This document shows positions 1,612 to 26,274 of a stretch of 64,000 nucleotides of DNA, one piece after another. Each line of letters begins with the position of its first letter. The first letter of the stretch is position 1. Location: the NCBI GenBank assembly GCA_964036045.1, contig OZ038378.1, positions 17,112,001 through 17,176,000 on the forward strand. Direction: 5' to 3'. Made by a program: the position numbers and the translations under genes. The DNA is from Eutreptiella sp. 'Long Island Sound 2002'. Its lineage: Eukaryota > Protista > Euglenida. Below the pieces are notes generated by a model. It ran no database searches. It saw only the letters and a program-made list of their open reading frames with translations, and had not been told where the DNA came from.

Positions 1612-1795
1612 TCGAACAAAGCCGCTGTGTCACCCTGGCCGTGCACCCTTTGATCCTGAAGATGTTCATCCTTTTCATTCAACCACCTCGCCGTCACATC
1701 GTTCCTTCAACTCGGCTCTTGATGTGGCACCACAAAATTCACCGGGACCCAAGCACCCATCCCCTGCAAGTGTGCAGTCGGATGTGAAGGCAGAG
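1612..1795 (+). CDS. Putative exon of an unknown Ser/Pro-rich protein with repeated DP..VHPF motif
   Basis: Acceptor ttttttttgcag|T (phase 2), donor GAG|GTATGG; encodes RTKPLCHPGRAPFDPEDVHPFHSTTSP...QNSPGPKHPSP. Confidence 0.5.
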
Positions 1796-3149
1796 GTATG
1801 GGCGACGAGGCCCCTCAGCATTCTACTTCTGTCCCACTCCTGCCTGAGACCCCAGACTGAAGCAGATCTACAGCAATCTCTGCACACCAATTCATCAATT
1901 GGGGTTTGCGAAAACAGCTGGCCGCCTCTACACTGCCTGAGAAGCTTCTCCAACAAGGCCCGTGTGACGCCTGTTGTGACTGGCATCATGGTCTATGCCC
2001 AAAAAGTATTCATGGAGAATAAAATGTGAACCTGACAATCCTGCACAAATTTTGTGTGCATGTTTATCTGGCAGTACAGGCACGCATCCCTTCTCTGCCA
2101 TTCAGCCATCGGAATCATCTTTTTTTTTTAACCATGAAGCACATGCGTCTAGTTTTTCATTGTTTATTCTTTCAATCTTTAGTGTGTGACCAGTATCTCC
2201 TCTCCAGAATGAAGCTACAGAGGGCGCTTCCCATGCAGCGTGCATTGCGGCAAGTTGGAAGAGAATCCTACCAGTATTAGGAGTGTAGATTCTTCTAGCA
2301 ATTTGACACCGAATTTTGTGCTCTGTGTAGGTTACAATAGGAGGAACAGTGGTTATTGTTGAATTTTACCCCTGGACATTGTTTTTACAAGAATATTTGC
2401 AAATGAAATTTGTCATTGTAGGGTTTCCTGGGGGGCGTATGACTTGGTGGGTGCTTTTTCACCACATGGAATGTATGAAAGGCACTTCACAATGAACATC
2501 GCTGGAGAGATGAGACATGATGTGTCACTCTCCCCTCATCGTTTCCGAACCCTACTATAATTGCTGCTTATGCTCACGCTCATGACGTCCCTCCTCTTTA
2601 CCAAAGTAGAAGCATGTGATTCCCTACCACAGTTTGCACGTTGAGTTGGCACGTCTGTGGAGAGCAATGGTGTCAATAGACCACCGTGGATCATCTTGAG
2701 GAAAAAGGTTGAAATCAATTAATTTGGCTTTGAGACCAACAAATAGAGTATTTTGCCCCCCCACTTTGTCTGAAAAAGGGATTCCCGTCTGACCATGGTT
2801 TTCCTTGATTTTGGTTTTGCCCCTACAAGGGGGGAGGACTGGTCTAAATTTTTTTTGCACCACTCAAGGGGTGGAGGTTGTGGGGGAGCGGGAGTGTTGG
2901 GCAATGGGCATGATCTTATGATCAATGGGCATGCTATGAAATTTGCAAGCCCAAAAATATCATCACAACATGGCTTTTTGATGGAGTTCACCTTGTCCCC
3001 ACCTATTGCAACACACCAGTTGTTCCTTGCATATAGCTTGTACCCAAGGGTGACGAATGAGGCTAGATGTCTGCATTGTACCACATGCGTCACTGGGTCT
3101 ATGTCCTATTTGCATTTGCCGTGTTGCTTGCATTCGCGTCCGTGTCAGC

Positions 3150-3452
3150 CGTGTAAGTCGCTTATTTTTTTTTTGGTTGTAGGCCAAGTATACCCTTTTT
3201 TTTTTTTGGCGTAAGTGGCGTGTGGAAAAAAAACTTGAAAATGCTATGGGTACGGGACCTATGCTTAAAAAAAAAGTACGCAATGTACACTTTTTTTTAC
3301 GCGACCTGCATGAACAAAAGTGCACACAACCTACAACCAAAAAAAGGTGCACGTGATTTACGCTTTTTTTTGTGCAACTTACACCAAAAACAAAGTGCAC
3401 GCGACCTACATCCAAAAAAAAGTGAACCCGATTTATGCCAAAAAAAATGAAT
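3150..3452. repeat. Poly-A-punctuated interspersed repeat (second copy 5228-5375)
   Basis: Shared aaaaaaagtgca(c/t)gcga(c/t)ttac(a/g)cc subunits in both orientations. Confidence 0.7.
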
Positions 3453-3529
3453 GCCGCCTCCCTTTCTCTATTTTGAGAGGGCTATGCGGCCACTTTGAAT
3501 CCTCCCTGCTACAAGGACGCCGAGACAGC

Positions 3530-3985
3530 ACAGGTCATGTAGCCATTTTGCCCACACTTCGGCCCCCAGGACGGCAGGGTTATGCACTCCCTTTTGATTT
3601 TGTCCCCACAATGGGGACCCCCAAGCGCAGGGTTAATGTAGCCATTTTGCCCACATGTGGGCCCCTAAGATGGCACAAGTTATGTAGCCCCCCTTTGATT
3701 TTGTCCAAGCATTGGGGACCCCCAAGACGGCATGGGTTATGTAGCCATTTTGCCCACACCTCGGCCCCCAAGATGGTAGGGTTTATGCAACCACTTTTCA
3801 TTTTGTCCCCACATTGGGGACCCCCAAGATGGCAAGGGTCATGTAGCTATTTTACCCACACCTTGGGCCCCAAGACGGCAGGGGTTATGTAGCCAATTCT
3901 GGTTTTGTCCCCACATTGAGGACCCCCAGAATGGTAGGGGTTATGTAACCCCTTGTGATTTTCTCCCCGCACTGGGGATTCCCAA
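3530..3985. repeat. ~100-bp dimeric tandem repeat, ~4.5 copies
   Basis: Alternating atgtagc(c/t)attttgcccac... (3537, 3636, 3739, 3841) and ttgattttgtcccca...ggggacccccaag subunits; related copy at ~46900-47030. Confidence 0.85.
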
Positions 3986-6619
3986 GATAGCAAGTCCATG
4001 CCCGTGGCTCACTGACTTCATTGTGATACAACTTGTTGGTAAGCCATGTTGCAATATCCTTGTCACTCAACCAATCTCCCTCCACAACAGGTGTTGTGTC
4101 AACCACACATGACCTGCAAGTATGCCTCCATGCTACTGGGATGGACACAACCGTATCTTCCCAATGTAGGGGCATAATGAGAAATGGCCATGGCGTTATA
4201 GATCAACCTCCAACAAAACGGGGTCTCCACACATGCGCAGACTGGGGTGTGGTTTCAAAGGGATGGTTGGTCGTGTGGCGACCAATCCTTGCATATTTGC
4301 GATGAGGCGATTGCCCATTAGGGAAGATTGGAGGTTATCTATACACTTTTGCCACAATGATTCATCCGAAAGGCCATGCGCATATCAACGCCGATCGCTT
4401 TGCCTGACTCCCTCCGCTATCCTAGAAAATGGATGCGAGGAGGATGCAATTTGCGAGAAAGCCGGAGAACGTGGTTCTGCACCAGCCTCCAACTATGAGT
4501 CCCCCGCCCCCATCCACTTCGCCCCCCATTGTCGAAGGTAAGGATCCTCTTTTGGAGCCCAAGGACAATAAGCTTGCCACCCCTACTTGGAGCCAAAAGT
4601 TGGAGAATCTCCTACCTCACTAGCCTCCAACTCCAAGGCCCCGCCTCCGTCTCGGGTGCACCAACACCCTACTGGGAGCCAAAGGTCGGGGATTCTCCTT
4701 CCTCCCCAGCCTCCAGCCCAGAGGACCGCCCCAGATCGGCGGTCGCTGAAAGGCAATGTTGATGCCCCCACACCAACCCCGCACTCCTCTACCTCCTTTG
4801 ACCCCACCAAAGATGATAACACCTGCCAATACGTGTTCATATGTGGGCAGCAAGTCTAGGTCCCCAAGGGGTATCCAAAGGACGCACAAGGTCAATTGGT
4901 GCGCGACTAAATGTTTATTGATGACGTGGCCAAGGACCGCAAACAGAATCTCTATCAAGCTTGTGCGTGGAACACCAATCTGCGTGCAAAGCCTAACTCA
5001 TTAGTCTCATTTGATCTTCAAACATGTGTTCACCATCTTCTTATCCATCATCTAGTTGGTGCACGTTTTGTAGCACATTCTCCTCCTCTCTTCTCTCATC
5101 TCCTGTTCTCTCCTCTCCCCTCAAGTCACCCTCCATGCCACAGCTCCAGTGCCTTACCAGGGGTACCCAAAATGTCCGAGGGGGCTATATTCTGGTAGCA
5201 CTGGTGGTTGTTGGGTGGTGGTTGTTGTTTTTTTTTTAATAAAAAAAGTGCATGCGACTTACACCAAACAAAAAGAAGTGCATACGATTTATGCCATGAA
5301 AAAAATTGTTACTTATTTCCACACGCGATTTACGCCAAAAAAAAATACGCGATTTGCGTTTTTTGCGCACTCGACCCACACTTTCCTCTTAGCGTCCTCC
5401 CTATCATCCTATGGTGCAGAGTGGTCAATCTCAACCCTGTAACCCATTGTATCAGCTCTCTGCAATGGCTCAGTTGGCCCCCGGCCCGGATGCATTTAAT
5501 TGGGGCTTGGAATGTACAGGTCTAAGGGCACCCGTATGACATGTTTGGTCAGTCTTGGGCGGCCATTCCTCTTTGGGGGAAGCCCTGACAAGACAGGGGA
5601 CAGGTCAAGACCACCAAGTATGCATTGCCTGAAGGAGCAGTTTGTCATGAACATCAGGAACAACCACTCATGGAGTGATATCAGTGTCTCCCTTTGAAGC
5701 AATTTTAACTGATTCCTCGACATCCAGTGGCAGTGCTTCAGTTGGTAAGACCAGTAGTAGTGACATTTGACTGTAACAATTCTAGCTGAAAGATTGGCTT
5801 CTGTCGCAATTTCTGCAGGTCAATCAGCCCCATTTTGTTTTGCTGTGTCTTTTGTTTGCCACACCAGAATGGGTATGCTAATGTGAGTGGTTGGGTTCGG
5901 GCATTGTGTGTCACTTTTTTTGTCGCAAATATTGTTGCATTTTTTGTTGCAAAAGGCAACCCGGGGGTCCAGCCTGGACGTACCCCTGCAGTTACATCCG
6001 TGCCTGCAAGGCGGGTGGGTGGGGATGCATGGTTTGAGATGAGAAAGACAAGATGATATGGTAAGCATGACTACTCATCCAGTTCCTGTTTCTATTTGCA
6101 CTAACCGTGCCCTAAGTGCACAATGTTCTCTCCAACATCCCCAAGAAAATCCGCCAGCATGGCCAGTTAGTGCTCAGAGGGAGCTTTGGCACCAGTGCAG
6201 TAGTCAGTGGCCTCCACCATGGAAGATGGTGTAGCGAGTCACAATGCAGAGGTAACAGATGATGAACAGGAAATTGTTGCCAATGCTGGAGTGCTTCACC
6301 CATTCGTGTCACCAATGGCAATCTAAAAAATAATGTTTGCTGTCACTATGATCTAAGATCTTGATCCGAAAAAAAGTAATGTGTCCAAAGGTTGTGGCTC
6401 CGGTGGAATTGGGGAAAATGTGCCCAGAATCGGATAACCTTGAATCAAAAGCGCGAATTTCAACTTGAAGTCCAGTGATTTGGACAAACTGGCCCAAGTT
6501 GCAGTGGCCAATTGCAGTTAGCACAATCATATGCACACCATGCGGGATGGGGGTTTCCCACTCCATGTGCATTGGACAGCAGCAATTCCCCACATCTTTC
6601 CCCTCTTCCATGGTTCCAG

Positions 6620-6835
6620 GTCAGCAAAGATCGCCTCTGTCCTCCCGTCAACCCTGACAGTGTACACCCATTCCATGGCCAGTCACCACCCAGCCCTGTG
6701 GTCCCTTCCCAGCGGTCATGCAAGCCCCCATTCCACAAGGATTCGGACACCTTGGTTGAGTCTGACACTGATGCAGAGAGCCCAGACCGTGATCAACAGG
6801 AGTCGGTGTCGTCCCACTCCAACACAAGTCCTGAG
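6620..6835 (+). CDS. Putative exon of the DP..VHPF-motif protein
   Basis: Acceptor tcttccatggttccag|GTC, donor GAG|GTCAGT; 216 nt, phase 0-0; VSKDRLCPPVNPDSVHPFHGQSPPSP...ESPDRDQQESVSSHSNTSPE. Confidence 0.58.
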
Positions 6836-6904
6836 GTCAGTCCTCCAAAGCCCAGGACACATTTCCTGAATAATTTCTCCATCTCACCCTACAAAAAGTT
6901 GCAG

Positions 6905-7671
6905 GCCCGGCGGAGCAGTGCAGATGTCTCTGCAGCACCTGTGGCATGGTCGTGCCTTGAATCCTTCCGCCGCCGAGCCAGTGCTGGGGACATCCAAATA
7001 CGGCGGTGTGCATGTCTGTGTGCGTCTGGTTGTCCAACCCGAGCTACAGGGAGGTAGGGATCCCTAAACAATGACATCGGCTTTGGTACCAAGCACCTCT
7101 GGTATGAGGGGGCACCAAATTATTCGGGGGAGATAAGACCCTAATATCCCGAGTGGGCAAGTATCTGCCGGGATGCACGCGTTGTGACGGTATTTCGGAG
7201 CACGACGGGGTTGTAGTGGTGGGGCTCTCGAGGGAGCCCTTGTTTCGCAGTAATATGACATTTTTCCTGAAGCCACCGGTCAGAAATTGGCCGGTGCATG
7301 AGGTAAGTGCAGACCCTCCGGAGATAGCGGCATATCGACAAGGCGGGCCGCTGGACTTCCACACTTCGCGTGACATAGCTCTCTCCCTTCTCCAGCACGC
7401 GCCCCAGTGCCCCGCAGAAATCCCTTACACACCGGTACCTCCTGTACTTTGGCAAGAGTACACTACCTACCTCTCCCACTCCATACCTACCAAAACCAAG
7501 GGGCGCCAACAAACGCACGTGCGATCAGCTTGTGCGCCACCGCGTCCTTTTAAGAGGGTTTGGCAGAAGATGTTGTCAACTGCCCGGGCATCGGTGGTGC
7601 GCTTTGCCGGGTTGTCAGGGTCCGCCAGGGGTGAAGCTTGGTGTTCCACTGGTCAGATGGCTTCGGCCAAG
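6905..7671 (+). CDS. Putative exon chain 6905-7053 / 7251-7302 / 7396-7671 of the same gene
   Basis: Phase-compatible chain 0-2, 2-0, 0-0, with donors GTAGGG (7054), GTAAGT (7303) and GTGCGG (7672), and acceptors ttgcag, tgtttcgcag and cccttctccag. No homology support. Confidence 0.33.
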
Positions 7672-8504
7672 GTGCGGTGAGACGTGCCGAATTTGGATTG
7701 TCATGGGACAAACCGGAAGAATGAGGGAAATGAGGAAAACAGCAGAGAACCGGAGGGGCTTCGCAGTAAACGCAGCAAACAGGCGAAAAGGTCAGCAAGC
7801 TGAGAAAATTAGGAAAATGGGGCCTGGACGCGGCTATGAATGGGCATTGCAGCCCGCTGGGGCCGAGCAGAGCTGTTACGGGCTGTTGGTCTGGTGACAC
7901 CCGTAGATTCGAGCCGTCATGGATTCAAGTTAACGCCGCCGTGATGAGGGGTGCCCCAATGAGGGATGGAGAGATGGGAAGGCTCTCGAGGTCATTGCAT
8001 CCCCCCTTTTCCCTCCATTTTGATTTTCGGAACATCCCCTCTGCTTGCGCACACTCTCCCTGGTGTCGACCATCCCCCCGCTTCCCCCTGTGGCAAACTA
8101 TATCCATGCCTGTATCCATGCAGGATCAATGACTGGAATGGCATGAAAGGAGTGCTGGGCTATTAAGCGCCTGTTGCCGAACCTCAATGCCACCCTCAAA
8201 CCCATTCCTCTTGTCAGTTTTCACCCATGGCCTCCAAGGTGCTACAGGACCACGTCACTTGAGGCCGCTTTTTCGCACACACCACTGTGCATGGGCTGTG
8301 ACAACATCCCCTCATGTGAAGGTGCAATCGCTCTTTTTGCATGAGCAAGTGAACTTCTTGGGTTCCTCCTGCAGAAGAATGTCATTTCAGAACACCCAAA
8401 GAGCTCACTGCACTGGAATCTGGGTGGTAGTCAATTAGAGATTTCGCTCCTTTGCACTTCCCTCAAACCATGCTGGACTCAAATTACTGTTCATGCTGAA
8501 TTAG

Positions 8505-8925
8505 TCAAACGGCATGGAGAATTGCACTGCAGAGAGCCTGCAGGACTGGCAATGCCGAATGCTGCAGCGGGGTAATGGGGGGGAAAGGTTTGGTCTGGTG
8601 TGATCCCCTCTGTTTGCGTTACGCCCCTGAATGCCAGCCCTGGACATGGTGTGTTTGGTGCTCTGCATTCCACAAGCTCACACGTGAGGATGATCGTGGC
8701 CGTGCACATCAACGGTGCTGCAGTCTGACAGCATTCATGGTCTCATCCCATTCATCCATTTGCAGTTTGTGCCGCACGGTCAATTGTGTTCTGAAGGAAT
8801 GTGGCCCCAGGGGTTGAGCTGTATGGGCGACCCAGCATCACGAATGGAACATTTTGTTCCAGCACTCAATGGAACAGGGATGTGTGCCCCTACGGGACGG
8901 CTCATGTGCTGCAGGATGCAGAGGG
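8505..8925 (+). CDS. Putative exons 8505-8571 and 8811-8925 of the same gene
   Basis: Phases 0-1 and 1-2 link in frame to exon 9094; donors GTAATG (8572) and GTTTGT (8926). Splice-signal inference only. Confidence 0.28.
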
Positions 8926-9093: not shown

Positions 9094-9343
9094 GTTGCCT
9101 GTGGAGACCATCCCGAACCTCAATCTTCCAATCAACCTTGACAATGTTGACCCTCTTGGGGCAGAAAAGCCCGCTGGTTCCCCAGTATCCCCAGAACGCC
9201 CCTTAAGCCCTGGGGTTGTTGCATTACCACCCAGCCCGGAGCCCCGCCGTAAACGGATGCCCCCCATGCCTTTGGACCCCGATGAAATCTTTCCGTTTGT
9301 GTCCCCACCGCGAACCCCGAACAAGTCACCGGTGTATCCTGAG
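9094..9343 (+). CDS. Putative exon of the DP..VHPF-motif protein
   Basis: Acceptor tacccttgtttcag|G (phase 2), donor GAG|GTGTGC; LPINLDNVDPL...GSPVSPERPLSPG...PMPLDPDEIFPFVSPPRTPNKSPVYPE. Confidence 0.58.
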
Positions 9344-9508
9344 GTGTGCCCAAGACAATCAGTTTACGGTCAGTTTCTGCCCGTGTTTTGTACTATCAGA
9401 AAGAGAGAGAGAAAGAGAGAGAGAGAGTGCATCTCGATTCCGCTGCTCCAGGGGAGGGTTATCTTTCGCAGGATCACATTTTGATTGTCGGCTTATGCAA
9501 ACTGTCAG

Positions 9509-11359: not shown

Positions 11360-13508
11360 GTCCGACCGCCGGGCCATTGCTCGCGAGCTGGTTGGGTATT
11401 GGTCGAGGGTTATGGTCGGGGGGGCCAAGTCCGAGGCAGAGCGTTATGTATGGCTGCAGCGTCGGGGCTTGCCGGCACAATGGCGCACGTTGGTACCTTT
11501 GCTGTGGAAGCCCTGCACTCTGGAACCCGTGCAAGCAGTGTTGCAGCAGATGGACCCTTCCTCTTCCCTAGGGGAGGATGGGGTCTAGGCGGGAGTGTAT
11601 CAACGGTTCAGTGGCTTTTTTGCACCACACATGCGTATTCTGAAATTGAGTCCAATGGCCTGCCCAGTACCCGGGTAGTGGCCTTAGTCCGTAGTCTGGC
11701 TAAAGAGCCAGGATCCGCCGCAGTAGAGGCGCAACGGCCGATAGCGCCGCAACAGGCACGTCTGAAGTGGCTAACTAGCATCTTGCTTCTCTAGTTACAG
11801 GGTGCGCTTTTTCAAATTGTGCCACAGGGCCAGAAAGCATATCTCAAGGGCCGCCACATTGGGTCCGTCCAGCAGCGTTGGGACTCGGGCCCAGGTGATT
11901 CCTGTGCCTGTTGGGTAGCAGTCGATTACTCCAAGGTATATGACTCGGTGAGTCACTCAATGCTTCGCGCTTTGTTTCGCTACGTTTGCATCCCAGCGGC
12001 GTGGGTGCATGTGTTGTGTCAAATTTTGTGTGGTCCGGTGTTTTTAGTGGGGGGGGGGATGCAGTTCGGGAGGAAGAGCTACGCCCCTAGTTTGGGATTC
12101 GTCATGGTGACCCACTGTCCCCGATTTTGTTTTCCCTCATCTTATCTACATGATGGCGCCGTTGGGCGCAATAATATGGCTTTACTCTGATGACGCGCTA
12201 CCGCGTTTCCCTTGTGCCTCAGATAAGGCTGAGGACCGATTGCATGCTGTGCGTGCCGTTTTCGATGAGTTTGGGGAGTACACGGGTTTGAGTTTGAACC
12301 TATTTAAGACCAAAATCCTCATGCAGGGCGTCGGGCCGTGGCCTTCACAGCTTGCTGGCATGTCTGTCGTACCTTGGGTCAAGTATTTGGGGGCCCTTTT
12401 TGGGGGCGTTGCGGCAACGGAGGCTTATGAAAAGGGGCTGACCGTCTTTGAGAGTCGCTGTGTGCTCATCTCTTGCATGCCTTTGTCCCGCCAGGAGAAG
12501 GTCCAGCTGGTTCACACCTGGTGCTATCCTGTCTTGCAAGTGTTGGCAGTGGCCTACTACCCCCCCCCCCCCCGTTGGTGGTAGTGCGCTTGCGTGCAGC
12601 GTTGCGTGTGGCGTTTGGAGTCGTTGGCACATGGAATGTGACGCTGGACATTCTGCTTTTGCCTCTGACCAAAGGGAGGTACGGTCTGTGGATGCCGGAT
12701 GTGTATCTACTTACGGCGCATGCCTCAAGTTTCTGGCGCTATCTTTAGCAGCCCACACGCTTTGGGCTCCACCAAAGGACGGTGCTCCGAGATTGGCTGG
12801 AGTATAAAGGGGTTGTTCACACAGTGCAGCAGCTTCCACTGATGCAGCTCTCCCTCTGCGCGGTCCGGGGTGCACCATGGTTGGTGTATAGTGTCAAGGC
12901 CGTTTCGGAGCTTAATAAGCTCAGGTCGGGGTTGTCTCTAGAGTGGAACTCCATTGCCTCTGCTCCGCTTCGGAATAGCCGTCTATTGACCGTCAAAAAC
13001 CAAATGGTCACGTGTCGATACTTCATTTTGCGCTCTGTTTTGCGTGTTCGTGACTTGGTGGACACGGGTTCATCGTCACACCTCTTGACTACAGAGAGTC
13101 GGGGCCATCGTAAACTCCGCCTCTCCTTCTAGGACAAACTGTCTACTGTTTTTACCCGCGCTAGTTCGGTCTTGGGAGTCCCATTTGCCTGTCAATGGGC
13201 CGTCGGAGCCACATGATATGGAAGGGGGTCTAAGCCTCTCTGCCTTGTCGCAGGGCGTTGCTTGTTCGCTGCGCGCGGACCGGCGTCAAGATCCTGCCAC
13301 ATGGCGAGCCTTTCATCGCCTGCGGCTGCCGCCGCAAGATTTAGATTTTATCCATACAGCGCTTTGGAAAAAGCTGGCTGTTGGGGTGCGGCTTCATTCC
13401 ATTTTTCCTAGCATTCCGCCCACCCGCTCTGTCTGTGGGGCGTGGGAGGACGTGTATCATCGTGTGAAAGCGTGCTCCTAGTTAGTTATTCCGGTTTGGG
13501 TACTGGAT
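11360..13508 (+). mobile_element. 5'-truncated decayed L1/Tx1-like LINE, 5' part (RT plus zf-RVT-like region)
   Basis: RT motifs across frameshifts and stops: RPIAPQQARLKWLTSILL, QKAYLKGRHI, VDYSKVYDSVSH, GIRHGDPLSPILF (12094), LYSDD (12183), TGLSLNLFKT, KYLG; zinc region LWKKLAVG...SVCGAWEDVYHRVKAC. No endonuclease seen; preceded by (CT)n(CA)n. Confidence 0.9.
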
Positions 13509-13997
13509 CAGCTATGTGTATAGCGACCTAGTCGGCTATCAGACATCAGACATCAGACTTTTATGGACCATCACTCCCAACCCCCCCCCCCCCCACCCCA
13601 ACACCCTTTTTACCCCCCCCCCCCCGTGTCAGACTTCGCCCCCCCCCGTGTCCCCCCCAATATCAGACTTGTCCCATTGTCACCACACCCTTGAGGTGTA
13701 GAAGTGGGTTGTGGTCTCGACCCTAGCGTCTGAAACCCAACCAGTGCTTGCAACCCCTTCAATGATGGTACGTGCCCCCCCCCCCCCCCCCACCCCACCC
13801 CACCCCACCCCATCTCTCTCACTCAAACCGATCAGGGGGCTCATATGTGATTGAAGACAAGTGGGAACAGAATCCTGATGTCTGGCCCAAGCAACCTCAC
13901 CTGAGCTAATCGGGTCAGTTTTGCTGGTGGGGTGGGTGGGTGGGGGTTCATCGGGTTGAGCCGGAACTGTGGAGAGGGGGGGTAGTGGGTTTCGAGC

Positions 13998-14182
13998 ACG
14001 GCACAGCACAGCACGGCACAGCACAGCACATCACAGCACATCACAGCATACCACAGCACAGCACAACATACAGCATAGCACAGCATATTACAGCACAACA
14101 CAGCACAACACAGCCCCTACGGCCGCCCAAGAGAGCCTCCCTCCCTCCCTCCCTCCCTCCCTCCCCTCCCTCCCTCCCTCCC
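13998..14182. repeat. (CAGCA)n followed by (CCCT)n microsatellites
   Basis: cacggcacagcacagcac... to ~14112, then ctccctccctccc... Confidence 0.9.
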
Positions 14183-14211
14183 ACCCTGTCATTTCCCTGC
14201 TTGTGTGGTTG

Positions 14212-14832
14212 AGGTTAGGGAGGGTATGCCTGTTTTTCTTTTTCAGGTTTGAACCATGACGATTGATCATATGCCGTTTCTTTATGGGTTGCCGGTGACA
14301 GCGTGTCACGGCACTGATCGAACGGTGGACCGTAGTTGCCCCCACATTTGCAAGTTTCTTTGTCCGTTTTTGAATCATGACGATTGATCATATGCCGTTT
14401 CTTTATGAGGTGCCACTGACAGCGTGTCACGGCACTGATCAAATGGTGGACCGTAGTTGCCCCCACATTTGCAAGTTTCTTTGTCCATTTTCGAACCATG
14501 GTTAGGGAGGGTATGCCTGTTTTTCTTTTTCAGGTTTGAACGATGACGATTGATCATATGCCGTTTCTTTATGGGTTGCCGCTGACAGCGTGTCATGGTG
14601 GATGTGGTGGATCATGGTGGGGTCATGGTGGACCGTAGTTGCCCCCACATTTGCAAGTTTCTTTGTCCGTTTTTGAAACATGACAATTGATCATATGCCG
14701 TTTCTTTATGAGGTGCCGGTGACAGCGTGTCACGGCACTGATCGAACGGTGGACCGTAGTTGCCCGCACATTTGCAAGTTTCTTTTTCCGTTTTTGAACC
14801 ACGACAATTGATCGTATGCCGTTTCTTTATGA
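14212..14832. repeat. ~120-bp tandem repeat, ~5 copies
   Basis: Recurrent catgac(g/a)attgatc...gccgtttctttatg...gacagcgtgtcacggcactgatc...ggaccgtagttgccc...catttgcaagtttcttt. Confidence 0.9.
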
Positions 14833-14834
14833 GA

Positions 14835-16006
14835 CCCCCCATATATATGACGGAACCCCATCCGTGAAATATTTGGGGGCTGTAGACCCCCCAGATATTT
14901 GACGGAACCCCATCCGTCAAATATTTTTGGGGTGTACAGCCCCCAAATATTTGACGGAACCCCATCCGTGAAATATTTTGGGGGTCTACACCCCCAAAAT
15001 ATTTCACGGATGTGGTTCCGTGAAATATTTGGGGGGTGTACAGCCCCCAAATATTTGACGGAACCCCATCCGTGAAATATTTTGGGGGTCTACACCCCCA
15101 AAATATTTCACGGATGTGGTTCCGTGAAATATTTTGGGGGTCTACAGCCCCCAAATATTTGACGGAACCCCATCCGTCAAATATTTTGGGGGTGTACAGC
15201 CCTCAAATATTTGACGGAACCCCATCCGTCAAATATTTGGGGGCTGTAGACCCCCCAAATATTTGACGGAACCCCTTCCGTGAAATATTTGGGGGCTGTA
15301 GACCCCCCAAATATTTGACGGATGGGGTTCCGTCAAATATTTTTGGGGTGTACAGCCCCCAAATATTTGACGGAACCCCATCCGTCAAATATTTTGGGGG
15401 TGTACAGCCCCCAAATATTTGACGGAACCCCTTCCGTCAAATATTTTGGGGGTCTACACCCCCAAAATATTTCACGGATGTGGTTCCGTGAAATATTTTG
15501 GGGGTCTACAGCCCCCAAATATTTGACGGAACCCCATCCGTCAAATATTTTGGGGGTCTACAGCCCCCAAATATTTGACGGGACCCCATCCGTCAAAGAT
15601 TTTGGGGGTGTACCGCCCCCAAATATTTGACGGAACCCCATCCGTGAAATATTTTGGGGGTCTACACCCCAAAAATATTTCACGGATGTGGTTCCGTGAA
15701 ATATTTTGGGGGTGTACAGCCCCCAAATATTTGACGGAACCCCATCCGTCAAATATTTTTGGGGTCTACAGCCCCCAAATATTTGACGGAACCCCATCCG
15801 TGAAATATTTTGGGGGCTGTACACCCCAAATATTTGACGGAACCCCATCCGTCAAATATTTTGGGGGTCTACAGCCCCCAAATATTTGACGGAACCCCAT
15901 CCGTCAAATATTTTGGGGGTGTAGACCCCCCAAATATTTGACGGAACCCCATCTGTCAAATATTTTTGGGGTGTACAGCCCCCAAATATTTGACGGAACC
16001 CCATCC
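14835..16006. repeat. ~52-bp palindromic satellite, ~22-23 units
   Basis: Unit CCCCAAATATTTGACGGA-ACCCCA-TCCGTCAAATATTTTGGGG plus an 8-nt linker (GTGTACAG/GTCTACAG/CTGTAGAC). Confidence 0.95.
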
Positions 16007-17735
16007 GGGGCCTATGGGGACCTTTGGGGGCCTATGGGGGCCTATGGGGCCCTATGGGGGCCTATGGGGCTCTATGGGGACCTATGGGGGCCTATGGGGG
16101 CCTATGGGGACCTATGGGGACCTTTGGCGACCTTTGTGGACCTATGGGGGCCTATGGGGACCTATGGGGGCCTATGGGGACCTATAGGGGCCTATGCGGG
16201 TCTATGGGGGCCTATGGGGACCTTTGGGGGTCTATGGGGACCTATGGGGACCTATGGGGGCCTATGGCGGCCTATGGGGACCTATAGGGGCCTATGGGGA
16301 CTTTTGGGGGCCTATGGGGACCTTTGGGGACCTTTGGGGGTCTATGGGGAACTATGGGGACCTATGGGGACCTATGGGGACCAATGGGGGCCTATGGGGG
16401 CCTATGGGGGTCTATGGGGACCTATGGGGGCCTATGGGGGCCTATGGGGGCCTATGGGGGCCTATGGGGGCCTATGGGGACCTATGGGGGCCTTTGGGGA
16501 CCTATGGGGGCCTATGGGGACCTTTGGGGACCCTTGGGGACCTTTGGGGACCTATGGGGGTCTATGGGGACCTATGGGGTTCTATGGGGGCCTATGGGGA
16601 CCTATGGGGGCCTATGGGGGCCCATGGGGTTCTACGGGGACCTTTGGGGACCTATGGGGACCTTTGGGCACCTTTGGGGACCTTTGGGCACCTTTGGGGA
16701 CCTATGGGCACCTTTGGGGACCTATGGGCACCTATGGGGATGGGGGCCGATGGGGACTCATCGGCATCTAGGGGGACCTATGGGGGCCTGTGGGGGCCTA
16801 TGGGGGCCTATGGGGGCCTATGGGGACCTTTGGGGGTCTATGGGGACCTATTGGGGCCTATGGGGGCCTATGGGCACCTTTTGGGGGCCTATGGGGGCCT
16901 ATTGGGGCCTATGGGGGCCTATGGGGGTCTATGGGGACCGATGGGGGCCTATTGGCACCATTGGGGACCTATGGGGGCCTATGGGGACCTTTGGGGGCCT
17001 GTGGGCGCCTATGGGGGCCTATGAGGGCCTATGGGGGCCTATTGGCACCTTTGGGGACCTATGGGCATCTTTGGGCACCTTTGGGGGTCTATGGGGACCT
17101 TTGGGGACCTATGGGGACCTTTGGGCACCTTTGGGGACCTATGGGGGTCTATGGGGACCTATCGGGACCTATGGGGGTCTATGGGGACCTATGGGGGCCT
17201 ATGGGGGTCTACGGGGACCTTTGGGGACCTATGGGGACCTTTGGGCACCTTTGGGGACCTATGGGCACCTATGGGGATGGGGGCCGATGGGGACTCATCG
17301 GCATCTAGGGGGACCTATGGGGGCCTATGGGGGCCTATGGGGGCCTATGGGGACCTTTGGGGGTCTATGGGGACCTATTGGGGCCTATGGGGGCCTATGG
17401 GCACCTTTGGGGGTCTATGGGGGCCTATTGGGGCCTATGGGGGCCTATGGGGACCTATGGGGACCTATGGGGGCTTGTGGAGGCCTATGGGGGCCTGTGG
17501 GGACCTACAGGGACCTATGGGCACCTTTGGGGACCTATGGGGACCTATGGGGGCTGATGGGGACTCATTGGCATCTAGGGGGACCTTTGGGGACCTATGG
17601 GCACCTCTGGGGACCCATGGGCACCTTTGGGGGCCTATGGGGCCCTATGGGGCCCTATGGGGACCTATTGGCACCTTTGGGGACCTATGGGCACCTTTGG
17701 GGGCCCATGGGGGCCTATGGGGGCCTATGGGCACC
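16007..17735. repeat. 10-bp G-rich minisatellite (GGGGCCTATG/GGGACCTATG variants)
   Basis: Direct reading; produces spurious MGAYGGLWGP ORFs in all three + frames. Confidence 0.97.
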
Positions 17736-18060
17736 TTTTTGTTTGCCACTTTCCTTGCTCACACATTTTCCCCATTTTCCCATTTTGGTGTTCAAAGTCT
17801 TTTTTACTTTTGTACTGCCATGTTTCTGATTGTCCAAGGTGGTTCCCCAATGATTTTTCAATTGTGTCCTCCCTTTTTGTTTTTTTCATTTGGGGGGGGG
17901 GGTTGATTTAGATTTAGGCATAGTTTCTCCCAATTTCCTCAGGGCATTAGACCCCTAGACCCACCTCCAGTAGATAAGAATATCAGACATCTTCTTGGAC
18001 AGACCGCACACACAACATCCCTTATCAGACATCAGACATCAGACTTTATACACATAGCTG

Positions 18061-19315
18061 TACTGGATTGTACCTTTCCGGCAGTGCAATCGGCCTCTGG
18101 CTGTGCGTCTACCAGTTGGTTGTGCTCTGACTACCTGAAGTTGTCGCTTGAACGAGCACCGGGTCTTCTGCTATGGAAGACGATTCGTGTGCTTTGGCAG
18201 TATCGTTGTGATGTGCGCTTTCGTGGCACTATGCCTGACATTTCAGCTTTTCTTAGGCTGCTGCACTCAGAGGTCGCCAAGTGGCTCGAAATGCCCTTGG
18301 CGCACCAGGCTATACACTTGTATATGGAGGGGCTTCAGGGATGGTTGTCTGATCGCAACATCCCAGTGCGTGATGGTTGAGCAATGGGCGTGCAAAATCG
18401 CCACCCCCCCCACCCCCCCCAGGGGGGGGGGTGAGCAACGGTCTCTCATGATGCGGCCCCTCCGCTGCGAAAGGGCCAGCCAGAAACGGGCGCGTGCGGC
18501 GGCAGCGGAGCCTCGAGAGATGGCTCCTGGTGTACATGTGCCGGACGTCTATACAGATGGGTCTTTTGCGCCTGAGGCGCCTGGGGTGAGCTTTGCTAGC
18601 TTTGGTGTATGGTTCAGCCCCCGAGACCTCCGTAATATCTCCTGACATCTGGATGGCATAGAACAGACCAACAATAGGGCTGAGCTATCGGCGGTCATTG
18701 CGGCGCTACGTGCTGTGCCGACGATGCAGCCACTGCGAGTTATCACAGATAGTAGGTATGTTTATGACGGGGCGACAGTACACCTGCAGCGGTGGTTCAC
18801 CCTGGACCGCCAGGTGTCTAATCTAGACCTGCGGCAGCAGTTGCGTGAGGTAATGCTATCCCGGAAAGCGTTGACGGCGTTTAGGCATGTGTACAGCCAC
18901 GTGGGCATTGTAGGCAACGAGCGTGCAGATGATCTGGCCAACGCGGGCCGCTTGGGGCACCCTGAGCGCCTGCAATTTCTAAGGGATCGCAGCATCAGGC
19001 AGTTGGCCCCACCCATTGTCCTGCGACCCTAACGTTGCTACTCTGCGGCTGTCTGGTTTGTTCGTTGCGGTGTTTCCACGCCTAACTGGTTCCCGCAAGT
19101 TTGCTGTGGGGGTGGGAACACCCGACCACCACGCGGTAGATGTTAGTGAGGTGGTAGTGCAAGCCTGTATTGTCCCTGTAGATGAATGGTATGCGGCGGG
19201 TCGCGCATGCCGTAGGCGGTGGTTTGAACCCCGGGGAGGGTTGGGATACACCAAACAGCGCGGCGGCCCCACCTATTCTGCCTGTGGGGCAGGTATTCGG
19301 ACCTCGTCGGTATAG
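18061..19315 (+). mobile_element. Same LINE, 3' part with RNase H domain
   Basis: Reading frame rejoins the 5' part exactly after removing 13509-18068 (IPVWVLD|CTFPAVQ...LWQYRCDVRF). RNase H motifs VYTDGS (18547-18564), QTNNRAEL, VITDSRYV, NLDL, HVYSHVGIVGNERADDLA; one in-frame stop at 18643-18645. Confidence 0.9.
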
Positions 19316-19372: not shown

Positions 19373-19741
19373 GGGTCGAAATGCGTAGATTTCGTGATGT
19401 GATCGATAATAATATTTACCTATCATCAAGGTTTTCCCTTTACTTGGCGCCTAGCACAGCGACCAGCCCCGCCCCCCCCTGAGTCTCCAGGGATGCATGG
19501 GGCTGGGATTTGGGGAGCGGTAGGGCACACGAGCATGCAATGTGTGTCTTGCTGCTACGTGGTATATGGTTCAAAGGGCAGGAGTCGCGGTGCGTTGGCG
19601 ACACTTGTCAATATGGAGCAACGAGCTCGTTAGGGCGGCCCCCCCTGCAGGGCTGGACAATGAACTCATGGTTTGCAGTAGTGCTAGGTCTGTAGGATTG
19701 TTGAACCTCGCAGTTTGAGCATGATTGGAATTGTTACCTTG

Positions 19742-19779
<38 letters not shown>

Positions 19780-19879
19780 GCGCACACGCACACGCACACG
19801 CACACGCACACGCACACGCACACGCACGCGCACACGCACACGCACACACACACACATACGCACACGCACACACACACGC

Positions 19880-19916
<37 letters not shown>
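19742..19916. repeat. (CA)n/(CACGCA)n compound microsatellite
   Basis: Direct reading. Confidence 0.97.
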
Positions 19917-19918
<2 letters not shown>

Positions 19919-20039
19919 ACAATTTGTTGCCAAACGTGTCGCCCTCAGGCGTCCATGGGCACGAAAGGCACCTGATGCTCCATGGACACCACGGGTGCCC
20001 TAAGGAAAATTTTGTCCACTTTGCACCCCAACACGATCC

Positions 20040-20365
20040 TTAAACCCAACCTTGACTCTAACGCCCTCCTCCAACCCTCAGCCTACTCCTAACCCTACAC
20101 CTAACCCTAAGCCTAATCCTAGCCCTAACCCTAGCCCTAGCTCTCACCCTAGGCTAGGGTCAAAGTGAGTGTTGGGGTCGAAAATGGAGAGCAATAATAT
20201 GGCAAAAGCAGCCATGAACCAAATCTGGGGGATCTTGTTCAGCCCAATCAACATGGCTGGCATGGCCAGACCAGCTGGCTGCAAAGGTTAGGGTTAGGTT
20301 TATGGCGATGGTATGGTTAGAGGGAGGGCAAGGGGAGGTAAGGGGAGCCTGTGCCCCCCCCCACC
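20040..20365. repeat. Telomere-repeat-bracketed interspersed element, copy 1
   Basis: Degenerate (CCCTAA/CCCTAG)n, then ~130-bp core, then GGTTAGGGTTAG; highly similar to 21520-21810. Confidence 0.85.
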
Positions 20366-20534
20366 CCCACCCCAAATCGCCCCACTTGGACCCCCCCCAC
20401 CCCCCACCCCAAACAATTTGACAATCACCCCGGGGAAGGCCCACTCCCCAAGCCCACCTGTCCAAGGAGCGCCTGATTGGTGGCGTGGGTCTCCAAAAAG
20501 GCCAGAGTGCCTGCCTCCTGCCTCGACCAGAGTT

Positions 20535-20815
20535 TTGCTTAACAACTCAGCATCTCCTGGGGGGGGGGGTCTGACATCACCCACCCACCCCCCTTGGACC
20601 CCCCCCCCCCTTAAGTGACTGGGCAAATTTTTCTCCAGGTCTTCAGCCAATCAAAAATTTTCTCTGGCGCCTTCGGTGCAAGTCAGTTTAGGCCAAAAAA
20701 TTTCTTCGGCGCCTTTGGCGCCTCTAACAACTCAGGGTCTCCTGGGGGGGGGGTTTCCCCCCCACAGCCCCACCCACCCACCCCCCTTGGACCCCCCCCC
20801 CTTAAGCAAAATTCT
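20535..20815. repeat. Interspersed element with internal direct repeat
   Basis: aacaactcag..tctcctggggggggg...cccacccaccccccttggaccccccccc.ttaag occurs twice, around a ggcgcctt(c/t)gg core. Confidence 0.65.
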
Positions 20816-21070
20816 GCCCTCAACCCATTTTCCATCACCCCTTGTGTTGCTGTATTTTTCTCGCCTCTTTTTTTTCAATTGCCATTTGCATTTGGACATT
20901 TGGACAAAACCCTCACTGGACCCTCTGCCTCTCCCACCACGTCCTGCAACTACTCAAGAACCCCTCCACCATGGAACAATATGTACTGATCTCTGTGGGT
21001 GACACCATAGTAAACCACGCTCTGCCCGTGCTCCACAGCAGATGAACAGTGCATTGCCCCTGTTACACAG

Positions 21071-21364
21071 GCCGTGCTGCGCCCACTGCCGAATTCCGAC
21101 AACAACAAACCAGTAACAGCTGGCGCTGTCAAATGCAAGCTTCCAAACGTGCCTTTTAACCCGGATAAAGTGTTTCCATTTGGAGCCACATCCCCGAGCA
21201 TGGCACAAGGAGCTACATCGCCCAGCGTAGCGCAGGGTTCGACGTCCCCAGTAGCTCAGGGTACACCATCGAAGCGATGCTCTCATCCAAAAGCCCCAAT
21301 GGACCCCAACACACTGCACCCTTTCCATGCTACCAGTCCCCAAGTCAACCAACGACAGCAGCAG
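21071..21364 (+). CDS. Putative exon with two copies of the motif
   Basis: Acceptor ccctgttacacag|GCC, donor CAG|GTATCA; 294 nt, phase 0-0; VPFNPDKVFPFGATSP...APMDPNTLHPFHATSP. Confidence 0.68.
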
Positions 21365-21519
21365 GTATCAGCGCCAGCATAGGGTCGGGTGCCCAAGTGT
21401 GGGTGAAGGTGGAAGTTGTGGTTTCTGGCAGGTGTCTGTCAGGCTTGTCCATTGCTGCATTGCTGTTTTGGGACTTTTGCCTGCCGTGGTGACTCTCTAC
21501 CACCTTAATAACTATACCT

Positions 21520-21810
21520 GGTCCTAATCCTATCCGTACCCCTAACCCTAACCCTAACCCTAACCCTAGCCCTAGCCCTAGCCCTAGCTCTAACCCCAGG
21601 CTGGGATCAGAGTTAGTGTGGGGGTCCACAATGGAGAGCAATGGTGTGGCAACAGCAGCCATGAATGAAATTTTGGGGATCTTGTTCAGCCCAATCAACA
21701 TGGCTAGCATGGCTGAACCAACTGGCTGCAAAGGTTTGGGTTAGGTTTATGGTGATGCTATGGTTAGAGGGAGGGCAAGTGGAGGTAAGGGGAGCCTGTG
21801 CCCCCCCCCC
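21520..21810. repeat. Telomere-repeat-bracketed interspersed element, copy 2
   Basis: (CCCTAA)4(CCCTAG)4, then core gggatcttgttcagcccaatcaacatggct, then GGTTTGGGTTAGG. Confidence 0.85.
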
Positions 21811-23882
21811 CCCCCTTCCACCCCAAAATTCCTCACCTGGACCCCCCCCCCCAACCTCCAAGGCCTTGTGCCAAACCCCCCCAACCGACCCTCCCGGACC
21901 CCCCCCCCCTCAAAGCCCCTCCCAGAACCGCCCCTCCCAGCGGCTGCCCCCCAGGGGGCCTTTGGCCAACGGTTAGTTGGGGGGGTCAGTCGGCGTCCAG
22001 GACCGAGGAGTCGCCCCCCCCCCCCCCCTGGGGGGGATCAAACCTGTGCACAGAACATTGAGTCGGAGGTACAATCCCGCTATCTACAATCCAGACAGAT
22101 CATGGTTCCATGAGCAATAGAGTAAGAGGCATCATACCACAGTCCTGCACCAAAGCTGTCCAAACTGGAACCTGGCATCATATTGTGTGAAAGGTACAAG
22201 CCAAGAAATTGCACACCTGCAGGCTCCGCCACTTGCCACCCTGCGGACCCATTTGCTGTAAGCACAATCCAGGTAAGGAAGGGGTGGAGCACAAGGGTCG
22301 AATGATATCTATGATGTCTATTTGGAACAGGCTTTCCTTGCCTTCATACGTATTTTTTGGCCTACGAGCCAAAGGCTTCTTGAAGCAAGCCCAAGTCCTA
22401 TCATCGTGTTGTCTTGTCGGTCCTGCCATCCGTCCGTCCGCTCGTCGCTCGTTCTGCAACCTTGCAGTGACAATGAAGCCCCTTGTCGAAATCATGCTTG
22501 CCCCATTCGGCTATTTCTCCCCCCTATCACCTGTTGTGCTGTTCGGAGACATCGCGGTTCGACCTCTTTTCGAATGAAATGCACTGGAAAGTCAGTGTAC
22601 AAACAAACCCCCTCAACCACCTTCACTGATCAAGTCTACCAAATAAGTCATGTAGCACCACTCTTTCTACAGCTGTCATCATACTCACCATGACATTCTG
22701 TGGCACGTTTTGTGGTTGGCAGCCTGCTTATGCCTCCATTTAGCTCATCGCTCTCTACAATGCTGAGCAGGGCCACACCTAGAGTGAGTGTGGATTGTGG
22801 TGAAATTTTGAAAAAAACTGCTCATCCCAATTGGCGTATGTTTGGGGGGTCGGGGGTCCAGCCATACACATAACCACTGTGGCACACCTGGTGGTGGTGG
22901 TGTGGGGTGGAAGCGGTGTGGAGGGTTCTGCTGGCTTGCCTTGCCTGCCGAGGGGATAACATCCTTCCTCCTTACCATGAATATGATCAGATCACCAGAG
23001 GTCAGATCACCACGCTTGGCATGTTGAGTATAGTGTTTTCCTTAAAATCGTGCATCTCGTTACACGAGGCGCAAACCGTCCCTGGGCATGCGCCTCGTGC
23101 GCGCCAGCCGTCCCTACATGCCTCGTGAGGCAGAACTATGGGTGTGTAGCTGGATTTCCACTCATGGTGAATGGGGAATGGGTTTTGTAACCCACGTGCT
23201 TACATTCCGGGTGAGGATATCACGAGGGGGGGTGCTGTTGGGGTCGTTATCTGAACAGGCGGCCCCCCATGCTCTGGGCTGTTCCATTCCCACAGCAATG
23301 GCAGTAAACGGCATGGATGGGCGAGCGGTGAGGAAACTCAGGTCCTCATATTCATCATTCTAGTGCCTCTACATATCGGACTGCACGTGCGTATCAGCTC
23401 CGGAACCCAACTCATACCGGGGGAGGGAGGAGATTTCGGGGCTCTGGGCCATCTTTTTCATTCCTTCTTTTGAAGAAACTATGGCAGTAGTGCCATTTCA
23501 TATCTGTGTGATGTGGTGAGTAGTGATTGTTGGGGTTTTGAGGATGTTGATTGCAGCTTGTCTGTCAATCAAGAGTAAGGTGAGCCGCCAACTCCGGCAT
23601 TTTCTGGTGAATTCATTCGAATCCAAGTCAGATAATTGTGCCGGGCCTCTCGCTACCACATAGGTCCTGATCATTGTTGGCCAGAACCTTGGCGCCAGAG
23701 GCACGGATTTTTGTTGTTGTTGAACCAATCCACTCCCTCCCTCCCTTCCTTCCTCCCTCCCTCCCTCCTTTTCTTTCCATTTGCTCCGAATTCACTCTGC
23801 TCCTTGCTCCCTTCTTTCGTGGCCCCCTTTCTGTTCTTGTTGTCTACATCCTCCTCACCCTCCACCCTCTTCTGCTCAACAG

Positions 23883-24092
23883 TGGACCATGGATGGTATG
23901 GTGCCACATCTTGTAGTCAGCCAGACTCAGTTTGACAAGGCACTGAGGAGCCCGCTGTCCCAAGAAGGGATGGCAAGGACCAGCCCCCTCTCCAGCCCTC
24001 CAAACAATCCGTACAGAAGTCCAAGCCGTCTGACAACACCTCCACAAGTCTGTGCATATGTTGCCCGCCAGGCACATGACGCAGATATGCAG
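23883..24092 (+). CDS. Putative Ser/Pro-rich exon of the same gene
   Basis: Long pyrimidine tract ending ctgctcaacag|TGG; RSPLSQEGMARTSPLSSPPNNPYRSPSRLTTPPQ; donor CAG|GTGTGC (or CAA|GTCTGT at 24048); phase 0-0. Confidence 0.5.
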
Positions 24093-24529
24093 GTGTGCTC
24101 TTAGCGTATGGACCCAGGGCTATGTCTGCTCGAACATCAGATGTCTAGGACACATCCTGTTGCCACAATTCCCTGCTCAAAGCATTGTTTAACAACATAT
24201 GTGCCATTCAAGCCAAGCACCAGAAACATACTGCTAGTCGCAATGTTGGACAAGCTGCAGGGAAGTCACACACTCAGTTCCGAGGTGAGATGAATGGGCT
24301 GTTCACGTAGCCAAATGTTGATGAGCTGTGGTGTCTAAGATTGTGAGCGCAGTGACGTTTTGCAAGTTCTTCTCCAGCCAACAATCACTGTCCCTTCTAG
24401 GGAGAGGATTTTCTCTTGGAGTCGGAGCAAGTCTGGAAAGGCGTGACCAGCCTTGCTGTGCGCTTATCCCCTACAACCCACTCATTGCTTCAGACCCTCA
24501 AGGCCCAGAAGCGGAACGTTACCGGAACA

Positions 24530-25030
24530 CTGTGTAGGATAATGGCAAAAAAAAAGGGAAAATGGGGGGAAATGGGGGGAAATTTTTTTTTGCATTCTTG
24601 GTGGAAAAATGGGACATTTGTCAGCCAAAACCCCCCAAATTGCACCTTTTGTTGGTGAACCTCAGGGGAGGGGCCGGCAGTTCCCATTTCCCCCCATTTT
24701 GTCACAAGGAAAAATGGGGGAAATGGGGGAAAATGGGGGTGAATGGGAATTTTCATCGTCCTTTCTGCCCCACAATACAGTTTGTGCCCCCTCCCTCCCA
24801 TCCTCTTGATTGCACACATATCTCTTGGGGACATTCAGAATGTGCCAACTTTGTGGGGTTTGGCACTTTTTGGGATTTTTTGACAAGTTTTGCTTCCATG
24901 TGCAAACATGTCATCGCATAGGGGGGGGGTATGTGTATACTTTTTGAAATCTGTGAGAAAAGGCCGTTTCAGAAATGTATGGGTTGGGGGGGGGGTAGGT
25001 GGTCACATTTTTCAGCACAGCACAACACAT
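24530..25030. repeat. Interspersed repeat family (related copies 46260-46440, 58200-58300)
   Basis: Shared catatctcttggggacatt, atgtgta(t/c)actttttgaaatctgtgagaaaaggcc and (aaatggggg)n blocks. Confidence 0.8.
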
Positions 25031-25073
25031 TGGACGGTGCACACAAACATGGCACTGCACCGTTGAATCATTT

Positions 25074-25560
25074 TTATTCTGGATCATCGTCATTATCAGC
25101 ATCCCCTTTTTCAGGCAGGGCTGGGGTGCCATTGGGGCAGACATCCCCCTGTTTGTGGACAGGGATATATTTCTTCAATTTTTCCCAATCCTGCAACTTC
25201 CGTGCCTTCACTGGCACCCACCCTTCGGAAAGAGGCATCATCGGTTGTGAGGTCCACATTTCGTTGTTTGGTCAACCCGACCTTGCGCCAGGGCAGGTGG
25301 CTGTGAACGGGAGGTACGGGGCTGTTTTGCCTGGCTACCAGGCTCATGCCGTTGCACCCACACCCAGGTTGCTCCCCCAGAGCGAGCCCTTTTGCGCACC
25401 AAAGGCTTTTGTGGTGCATCGGGGGAAGCAACAGCCCGTGGAGTGAATTTGTATGTTGACATGGTGGCTGCCTGTTGACAAAAAGAGGCAGCAAGTAACA
25501 CAGGCACCGGCCAAAACGGACGAAAATATCAAACATGTTGTCAGCATGCAGACCCAGGGT
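25074..25560 (-). pseudogene. Possible decayed Sola-like DDE transposase C-terminal fragment
   Basis: LHADN, AFGAQK and PVKARKLQDWEKLKKYIPVHKQGDVCP in different frames; resemblance recalled by eye, not searched. Confidence 0.28.
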
Positions 25561-25935
25561 GTTCCAAATAGCCATTTTCAAGGGCTCTCCGGATATACCC
25601 CACATACCCCCCCCTCCGGAACACTCAGTGGCACAAATGAGGCAACAAGGGCACCAACCCACGAAAACCCACAAAGTTGGCACAAACGGTGTCGTCCCCG
25701 AGAGAATATGGAAGAAGTCGGTCCGACTGGCGACCCCTTGGTGAAATGTGATGTCATCTAGTCTCACAGGACTTGTTTGGTATTCCGCCTGAGGAAACAT
25801 TGCTGCACAAGACACCACTTTTGCCCCCAACTCCCAACACCCACCCCTCCTCGCCCTCCGAAGGTCCAGGCACTCCCAGGCACCCCACTGGTTTGGGCAG
25901 TCCCATCCTTTGATGCCCCTGTTGTGCTTTCGTAG

Positions 25936-26274
25936 GCCTTCCGTCAGAGCCAGTTCCGCCCTCCGCCGCTAGACCCTGCCTGGTTCCGTGGTTTGGGGTA
26001 TCGGTCCGACAGCTCACGCAGCCCCTCACTCAGCCCTCTTAGCCCTCCTTCTCCCTTCTATGCCACCCCACTGTCTGGACCAGACAGCCCCCAGCCCTGG
26101 CGCCCCCCAAGCCCCCTGGCACGCTCGCAACTGTCCTTGGGAGTCTCCACAGCCATCAGCTCTGCCTCCACAACCACAACCATACCTGCAGTTCCCAAGG
26201 GCATCCCCAAGCATTTACTGACAAGTCTGCCAGTGGACACCCACAATGTGCACCCTTTTAAGCCGTGTGCTTAG
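25936..26274 (+). CDS. Putative terminal exon of the DP..VHPF-motif protein
   Basis: Acceptor tgtgctttcgtag|GCC, phase 0; ...PPPLDPAWF...RSPSLSPLSPPSP...LPVDTHNVHPFKPCA then TAG. Confidence 0.62.
   Translation, partial: AFRQSQFRPPPLDPAWFRGLGYRSDSSRSPSLSPLSPPSPFYATPLSGPDSPQPWRPPSPLARSQLSLGVSTAISSASTTTTIPAVPKGIPKHLLTSLPVDTHNVHPFKPCA

Follow-up and report, generated by a model that had tools for sequence, protein, structure and literature searches.

A euglenid locus with eleven copies of a proline-framed peptide motif as a candidate orphan multivalent-motif gene

Why does one short peptide recur, kilobases apart and on a single strand, along a stretch of DNA from the euglenid alga Eutreptiella sp. 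'Long Island Sound 2002'? The stretch (hereafter the window) comprises 64,000 nt of contig OZ038378.1 in assembly GCA_964036045.1 (positions 17,112,001 to 17,176,000, forward strand), and the peptide follows the pattern P-x-[DN]-P-x-x-[VIL]-[HF]-P-F. Judged from the sequence, the reading that we favor, with a probability of roughly 45%, is that the locus encodes a disordered multivalent scaffold in which each of 11 motif copies docks one copy of a partner's folded domain.

The motif was searched as the regular expression P.[DN]P..[VIL][HF]PF in the six-frame translation of the window, and 80 kb upstream of the window was included (144 kb in total; negative positions lie upstream of the window). 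Inside the window, the + strand carried five strict copies (1646, 6644, 9269, 21152, and 21296), the degenerate copies PINLDNVDPL at 9128 and PVDTHNVHPF at 26230 (the latter followed by KPCA and a stop), and a truncated copy, PLDPAWF, at 25966. The six copies and two weak copies listed in the original prediction were therefore all found in place, but the list was incomplete: four additional strict copies lie upstream of the window at -4347, -2019, -1815, and -539 (G000:C1:17107653, 17109981, 17110185, and 17111461, + strand), which brings the total to 11 copies, nine strict and two degenerate, all on the + strand. These 11 fall within 31 kb at a spacing of roughly 45–120 residues, and the remaining ~110 kb of the 144 kb searched contained no strict copy. 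Over the 144 kb, nine strict copies were observed on the + strand and none on the - strand, against 0.004 expected from the six-frame amino-acid composition; 60 block shuffles yielded none. The comparison with shuffled sequence that had been proposed along with the original prediction thus came out in its favor.

Alignment of the 11 copies gave the consensus P-Φ-[DN]-P-[EDN]-x-[VIL]-[HF]-P-F, with three prolines invariant in each copy. Position 5, which follows [DN]-P, is E, D, N, or H across the 11 copies and E, D, or N in all nine strict ones, and a His stands directly after the motif (H-P-F-H) in 5/11. At the three invariant proline columns all four proline codons are used, with a third-position pairwise identity of 0.25. 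Nucleotide identity is 0.64 within the motif versus 0.27–0.28 in the 60-nt flanks, which is the random level, and the sequence between copies is without similarity. Because silent sites and flanks have been randomized while the peptide has been kept, selection acts on the peptide and not on the DNA, in agreement with the earlier observation that amino acids are conserved while codons differ. The window is rich in repeats, which would suit a pattern produced by chance or by a DNA-level repeat (transposon or satellite copies); that explanation is refuted by the excess over expectation, the empty shuffles, the random flanks, the differing codons, and the single-copy status of the motif exons, and its likelihood is practically negligible.

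Each motif copy sits in an open frame, and neither a stop nor a frameshift occurs within any motif exon. Acceptors (AG) were ranked on their pyrimidine tracts and donors (GT) on their match to the consensus, and the phases were compared. This procedure gave eight inferred coding exons on the + strand, labeled E1 to E3 and E5 to E9. E1 (-4389 to -4310) carries the copy at -4347 and a candidate start codon, the ATG at -4389, just past an in-frame stop; only in this most upstream frame is there a Met ahead of the motif, and within the other seven exons no Met precedes the copies. E2 begins at -2068, ends at a phase-0 donor between -1768 and -1588 for which there are several options, and carries the copies at -2019 and -1815, whereas E3 (-671, or -629, to -346) carries the strict copy at -539.

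The remaining exons lie inside the window. E5 (1612–1795, 184 nt) contains the strict copy PFDPEDVHPF at 1646–1675; its best acceptor is ttttttttgcag/T at 1612 and its best donor GAG/gtatgg at 1795, and its phase agrees with both the E3 donor at -346 and the E6 acceptor. E6 (6620–7053, 434 nt) contains the strict copy PVNPDSVHPF at 6644–6673 between an acceptor with 17/20 pyrimidines (ccatggttccag/G) and the donor GAG/gtaggg at the end of the open frame. E7 (9094–9368, alternative donor 9343) contains PINLDNVDPL at 9128–9157 and the strict copy PLDPDEIFPF at 9269–9298, and its acceptor (cccttgtttcag/G, phase 2) agrees with the E6 donor at 7053. Its two donors, 9368 (phase 1) and 9343 (phase 0), pair in frame with the E8 acceptors at 21039 and 21071, respectively. 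E8 (21039–21364, alternative acceptor 21071) contains the strict copies PFNPDKVFPF at 21152–21181 and PMDPNTLHPF at 21296–21325, and its sole good donor, CAG/gtatca at 21364 (phase 0), agrees with the acceptor gtgctttcgtag/G at 25936 (phase 0) of E9. This last exon (25936–26274) contains the truncated PLDPAWF at 25966–25986 and the degenerate C-terminal copy PVDTHNVHPF at 26230–26259, and it closes with the stop at 26272–26274.

In silico, the top-ranked GT/AG sites were in phase at six junctions (E1–E2, E3–E5, E5–E6, E6–E7, E7–E8, and E8–E9), with several phase-0 donor options at E2–E3. The predicted gene spans ~30.7 kb (G000:C1:17107611-17138274, + strand), with transposon-laden introns of 2–12 kb and a predicted product of ~750–815 residues. 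The open frames bounded by an AG acceptor and a GT donor or stop that had been described at the outset are thus joined in frame by canonical sites; for the ~25-kb gene then proposed to begin at 1612, the stop is unchanged, but the start lies at least 6 kb further upstream. The locus appears to be a nuclear gene of a euglenid alga, present as a single copy and split into several exons that one mRNA would join. Its 5' end probably lies between -18.8 and -4.4 kb, because -54 to -19 kb is occupied by nested Ty3/gypsy-type elements.

Genome-wide comparison revealed that E2, E3, E6, and E9 match only themselves in the 2.28-Gb genome and that the flanks of E5 are likewise unique. A profile hidden Markov model (HMM) of the 11 copies, a check suggested with the original prediction, matched only those 11 places in this genome, with the next match at E = 1. 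The motif back-translated into a degenerate DNA pattern gave 195 genome matches versus 99 for the control, the excess being mostly a C-rich repeat; the sole cluster of matches genome-wide was this locus, and none of the stray single matches had E, D, or N at position 5. The strict motif is private to one gene in this genome and is therefore not a widely shared short linear motif (SLiM) there. A C-rich 30-mer (CCCCTGGACCCCCCCCCCCTCCTCCCCTTC and variants) occurs on many chromosomes, for example at G000:C4:5644428 and C13:5023167; probably belonging to a dispersed repeat, it was the source of most matches that the back-translated pattern gave by chance.

Searches for relatives, like the folding described below, were performed exon by exon and not on a joined protein. 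Pfam-A returned no family at E < 0.01 for E2, E3, and E5–E9 (E1 was left out as too short), Rfam returned nothing, and length-filtered word-index searches with E2, E6, and E9 gave no match. An all-length HMMER search with E2 against 1.84 billion representatives gave a single match, which was rejected as spurious (an unrelated tandem-repeat open reading frame (ORF) from one ENA contig). The motif profile had no match in the PDB even at E up to 10, and the ESM Atlas gave no usable match. A metagenome scan for the back-translated motif plus His found 43 loci, each with a single copy in a context not rich in Ser and Pro, which corresponds to chance level. Peptides of the motif gene were absent from the supplements of a Euglena gracilis transcriptome and proteome paper (PMC6366073). 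The family, which had gone unrecognized in the original prediction, therefore gained no relative from the Pfam, HMMER, or PDB searches.

The lack of any transcript or protein match in the searched collections would fit a locus that is not one working gene, being composed either of exons of at least two neighboring genes or of a decaying, unexpressed gene whose copies have not yet eroded. The heavy transposon invasion of the introns, with one insertion identical to other members of its family, and the want of one fixed site for the 5' end and the E2 donor point in the same direction. However, the absence of matches is weak evidence for a silent gene, because the euglenid transcript coverage of these collections is uncertain. 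Moreover, 11 intact copies with saturated silent sites require long purifying selection, the motif exons are free of stops and frameshifts while seven of the eight have no upstream Met of their own, and independently top-ranked splice sites agree in phase at every tested junction. We regard more than one gene, or a decaying one, as quite unlikely.

If the exons do form one gene, its product would be a chain without a recognizable domain or confident fold that is probably disordered. Over the summed exon pieces the composition is P 15%, S 14%, A 8%, and T 7%, with Trp, Tyr, and Ile scarce, and Ser or Thr followed by Pro ([ST]P) was observed 46 times in ~940 residues versus 30 expected from composition, which bears out the earlier description of an SP/TP-rich protein. 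Disorder-promoting residues make up 58–67% of each exon, and neither a membrane segment nor a signal peptide was seen in the exons. AlphaFold2 modeling of E2 alone gave a predicted local distance difference test score (pLDDT) of 52 and a predicted template modeling score (pTM) of 0.16. The model contained a three-residue helical turn inside the second motif and otherwise only a low-confidence helix, which lies toward the end of the query, past the first candidate donor.

How might such a chain work? In the scaffold reading, each copy of the motif would be a short docking peptide. From [DN]-P-[ED], classically a helix N-cap, we infer one proline-framed turn with four hydrophobic side chains: the segment may start a single helical turn that would present positions 2, 7, 8, and 10 to one folded partner domain. 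With eleven sites of this kind, the protein would act as a multivalent scaffold and bind many copies of the partner by avidity, and the dense S/T-P sites around the motifs would be candidate phosphorylation switches. A more specific version, which we put forward tentatively and consider rather doubtful, holds that a motif of 10–16 residues represents a new class of SLiM with a dedicated euglenid reader domain, and that the 11-valent scaffold clusters or polymerizes its partner under phospho-control.

Several points weigh against the scaffold. Confinement of the motif to this one gene leaves no independent sign of a reader domain, and with no orthologue among the searched collections there is no between-species conservation to show. 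The word-index searches with E2, E6, and E9 and the HMMER search with E2 yielded no transcript-derived protein, and the AlphaFold model, made from a single sequence, is weak evidence for disorder. Neither the E2 donor nor the true 5' end has one fixed site. In addition, about 72% of introns in one Euglena species have been reported to be nonconventional (non-GT-AG), their signatures being CAG at +4 to +6, CTG at -8 to -6, and base-paired intron ends (PMC12501133). Since most introns in that species are nonconventional, a GT-AG-only model is unsafe without RNA; ours may be wrong in detail and stays hypothetical. Frame-consistent CAG/CTG pairs are present at the locus, but their paired runs are at most 7 nt long including the motif itself, and they are no better than the GT-AG alternatives.

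The same [ST]P excess would also suit copies on which a modifying enzyme docks or which it recognizes (such as a proline-directed kinase, a phosphatase, or a prolyl isomerase or hydroxylase), the protein then being a multisite substrate or sensor. The three invariant prolines of each copy are compatible with such an enzyme, and a basic residue (K/R) lies upstream in 10/11 copies (P = 0.02, post hoc); together with the motif it loosely resembles the basic-plus-hydrophobic docking sites of kinases. However, [ST]P sites are dense throughout and not specially beside the motif. A site follows the motif in 7/11 copies against a background of 0.47 (P = 0.21), so that this part of the original prediction, an SP site often following the motif, is not upheld. 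The motif also fits none of the tested docking consensuses, and its confinement to one gene would be unusual for an enzyme docking site. Docking of a modifying enzyme seems unlikely to us.

Residues around the motif raise a further alternative, namely a structural or metal-binding element of a repeat protein (with the upstream Cys, Asp/Asn, and His at positions 8 and 11 as possible ligands) or, in a fibrous or cortical protein, a rigid turn framed by prolines. A Cys occurs at most 8 residues upstream in 6/11 copies (background 0.17, P = 0.005, post hoc), H-P-F-H is found in 5/11, and the spacing of copies is regular in three exons (47, 48, and 68 residues). Nevertheless, in three strict copies position 8 is Phe rather than His and position 11 lacks His, five of the 11 have no upstream Cys, there is no similarity between copies, and no fold was predicted, all of which makes a structural or metal-binding role very unlikely.

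For the multivalent scaffold, three known systems offer comparison. The tails of the endocytic adaptors Eps15, epsin, and AP180 carry arrays of DPF, DPW, and NPF motifs. Like them, the predicted protein is probably disordered, is rich in Pro and Ser, and is furnished with many short motifs that contain [DN]-P and end in Phe. However, in the present motif E, D, or N comes after [DN]-P, the Phe stands six residues further on, behind H/F-P, and the unit extends over at least 10 residues instead of 3. A contiguous N-P-F, D-P-F, or D-P-W, as EH domains or the AP-2 appendage would call for, occurs in 0/11 copies, and the only NPF nearby is inside a transposon ORF. The remark in the original prediction that the motif only loosely recalls NPF/DPF is in keeping with this count.

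A second parallel is offered by ASCIZ/ATMIN-type multivalent clients of the hub protein LC8. Drosophila ASCIZ has seven motif copies, and the LC8 motif is a TQT-anchored 8-mer common to more than 100 client proteins (PMC5963919, PMC10046861). The predicted protein shares with ASCIZ a long, putatively disordered chain with many copies of one short recognition motif and non-conserved linkers, and in ASCIZ multivalency is functional. Unlike in LC8 clients, the motif is proline-framed and restricted to a single gene of this genome, and TQT was found neither in nor beside any of the 11 copies. Within the Euglenozoa, the kinetoplastid MKT1-binding motif H(N/D/E/Q)PY occurs once per protein in many RNA-binding proteins (PMC3985637). 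It is likewise a short linear motif of His, Pro, and an aromatic residue in disordered regions; however, H-(N/D/E/Q)-P-Y is present in 0/11 copies, which have H/F-P-F instead, with no residue between His and Pro and with Phe in place of Tyr. The order here is [DN]-P-x-x-Φ-H-P-F, in eleven copies within one protein. On these sequence comparisons, the overall design resembles known multivalent-motif proteins and the motif itself matches none of the systems compared.

If real, the locus would be a clean natural array of multivalent linear motifs, in which eleven copies were kept while linkers and silent sites drifted, and this pattern of drift would define the essential positions of the motif without experiment. 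With the peptide as bait, a new reader domain might be found in euglenids, a group with little-mapped cell biology, and the gene would illustrate that a euglenid gene can stay intact although transposon-invaded introns spread it over ~31 kb. For now, this putative orphan multivalent-motif gene, with its predicted transcript and hypothetical partner, is of value as a lead.

The introns themselves contain several identifiable elements. Between E3 and E5, a high-copy element of ~1,019 bp lies on the + strand at -170 to 848 (its 3' part, 1–848, being inside the window). It contains an intact ORF of 172 aa (-77 to 438) with at least 153 genome matches, many of them 100% identical; its copies at the DNA level share the same boundaries, and a 26-nt direct subrepeat lies near both ends. 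The ORF has a CxxC...H..C...CxxC pattern, the sequence NPFF, a Thr-rich run, and a basic run, and it matches no Pfam family. As a candidate exon with a zinc module it was rejected, being part of an intronic, ~1-kb high-copy transposon. Since many copies are 100% identical, this element was active very recently.

The 11.7-kb intron between E7 and E8 contains retroelement debris on the + strand at 11795–19029, whose LINE-like (long interspersed nuclear element) ORFs are split by a nested, satellite-carrying element at about 13.5–18.07 kb. Pfam matches comprised RNase H (E = 4e-21, 18646–19029) and a weak RVT_1 match (12111–12581). Within the nested element, satellite arrays occupy 14836–17736, beginning with 22.6 copies of a 52-bp unit that are directly followed by ~174 copies of the 10-bp unit GGGACCTATG; these arrays have long open frames in all three + frames. 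Interstitial telomere-like (CCCTAA/AACCCT)n arrays are located ~0.9 kb upstream (20073–20152) and 0.16 kb downstream (21523–21596) of E8.

Upstream of the predicted gene, the large + strand ORFs at -34 to -19 kb belong to Ty3/gypsy-type retrotransposons and were therefore rejected as candidate N-terminal exons. The region from -54000 to -18800 holds at least four nested copies of such long terminal repeat (LTR) retrotransposons on both strands; long open pol frames of as much as 1,254 aa encode their RVT_1, RNase H, and integrase domains. Downstream of the gene, a GC-rich (0.62) block of ~1.8 kb at 37420–39230 consists of degenerate GCAGTGCAGCACAGCACACACAGT-type minisatellites; beyond it, at 39530–39700 and 39971–40074, lie GGTTGGC/CCAACCG arrays in inverted orientation. 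Finally, a human or other vertebrate origin of the DNA was rejected: the 64 kb contain no Alu core, the genome measures 2.28 Gb, and a 24-mer taken to be the euglenid spliced leader occurs 5,458 times in it, on both strands and spread along chromosome 1, whereas its reversed control occurs 0 times.

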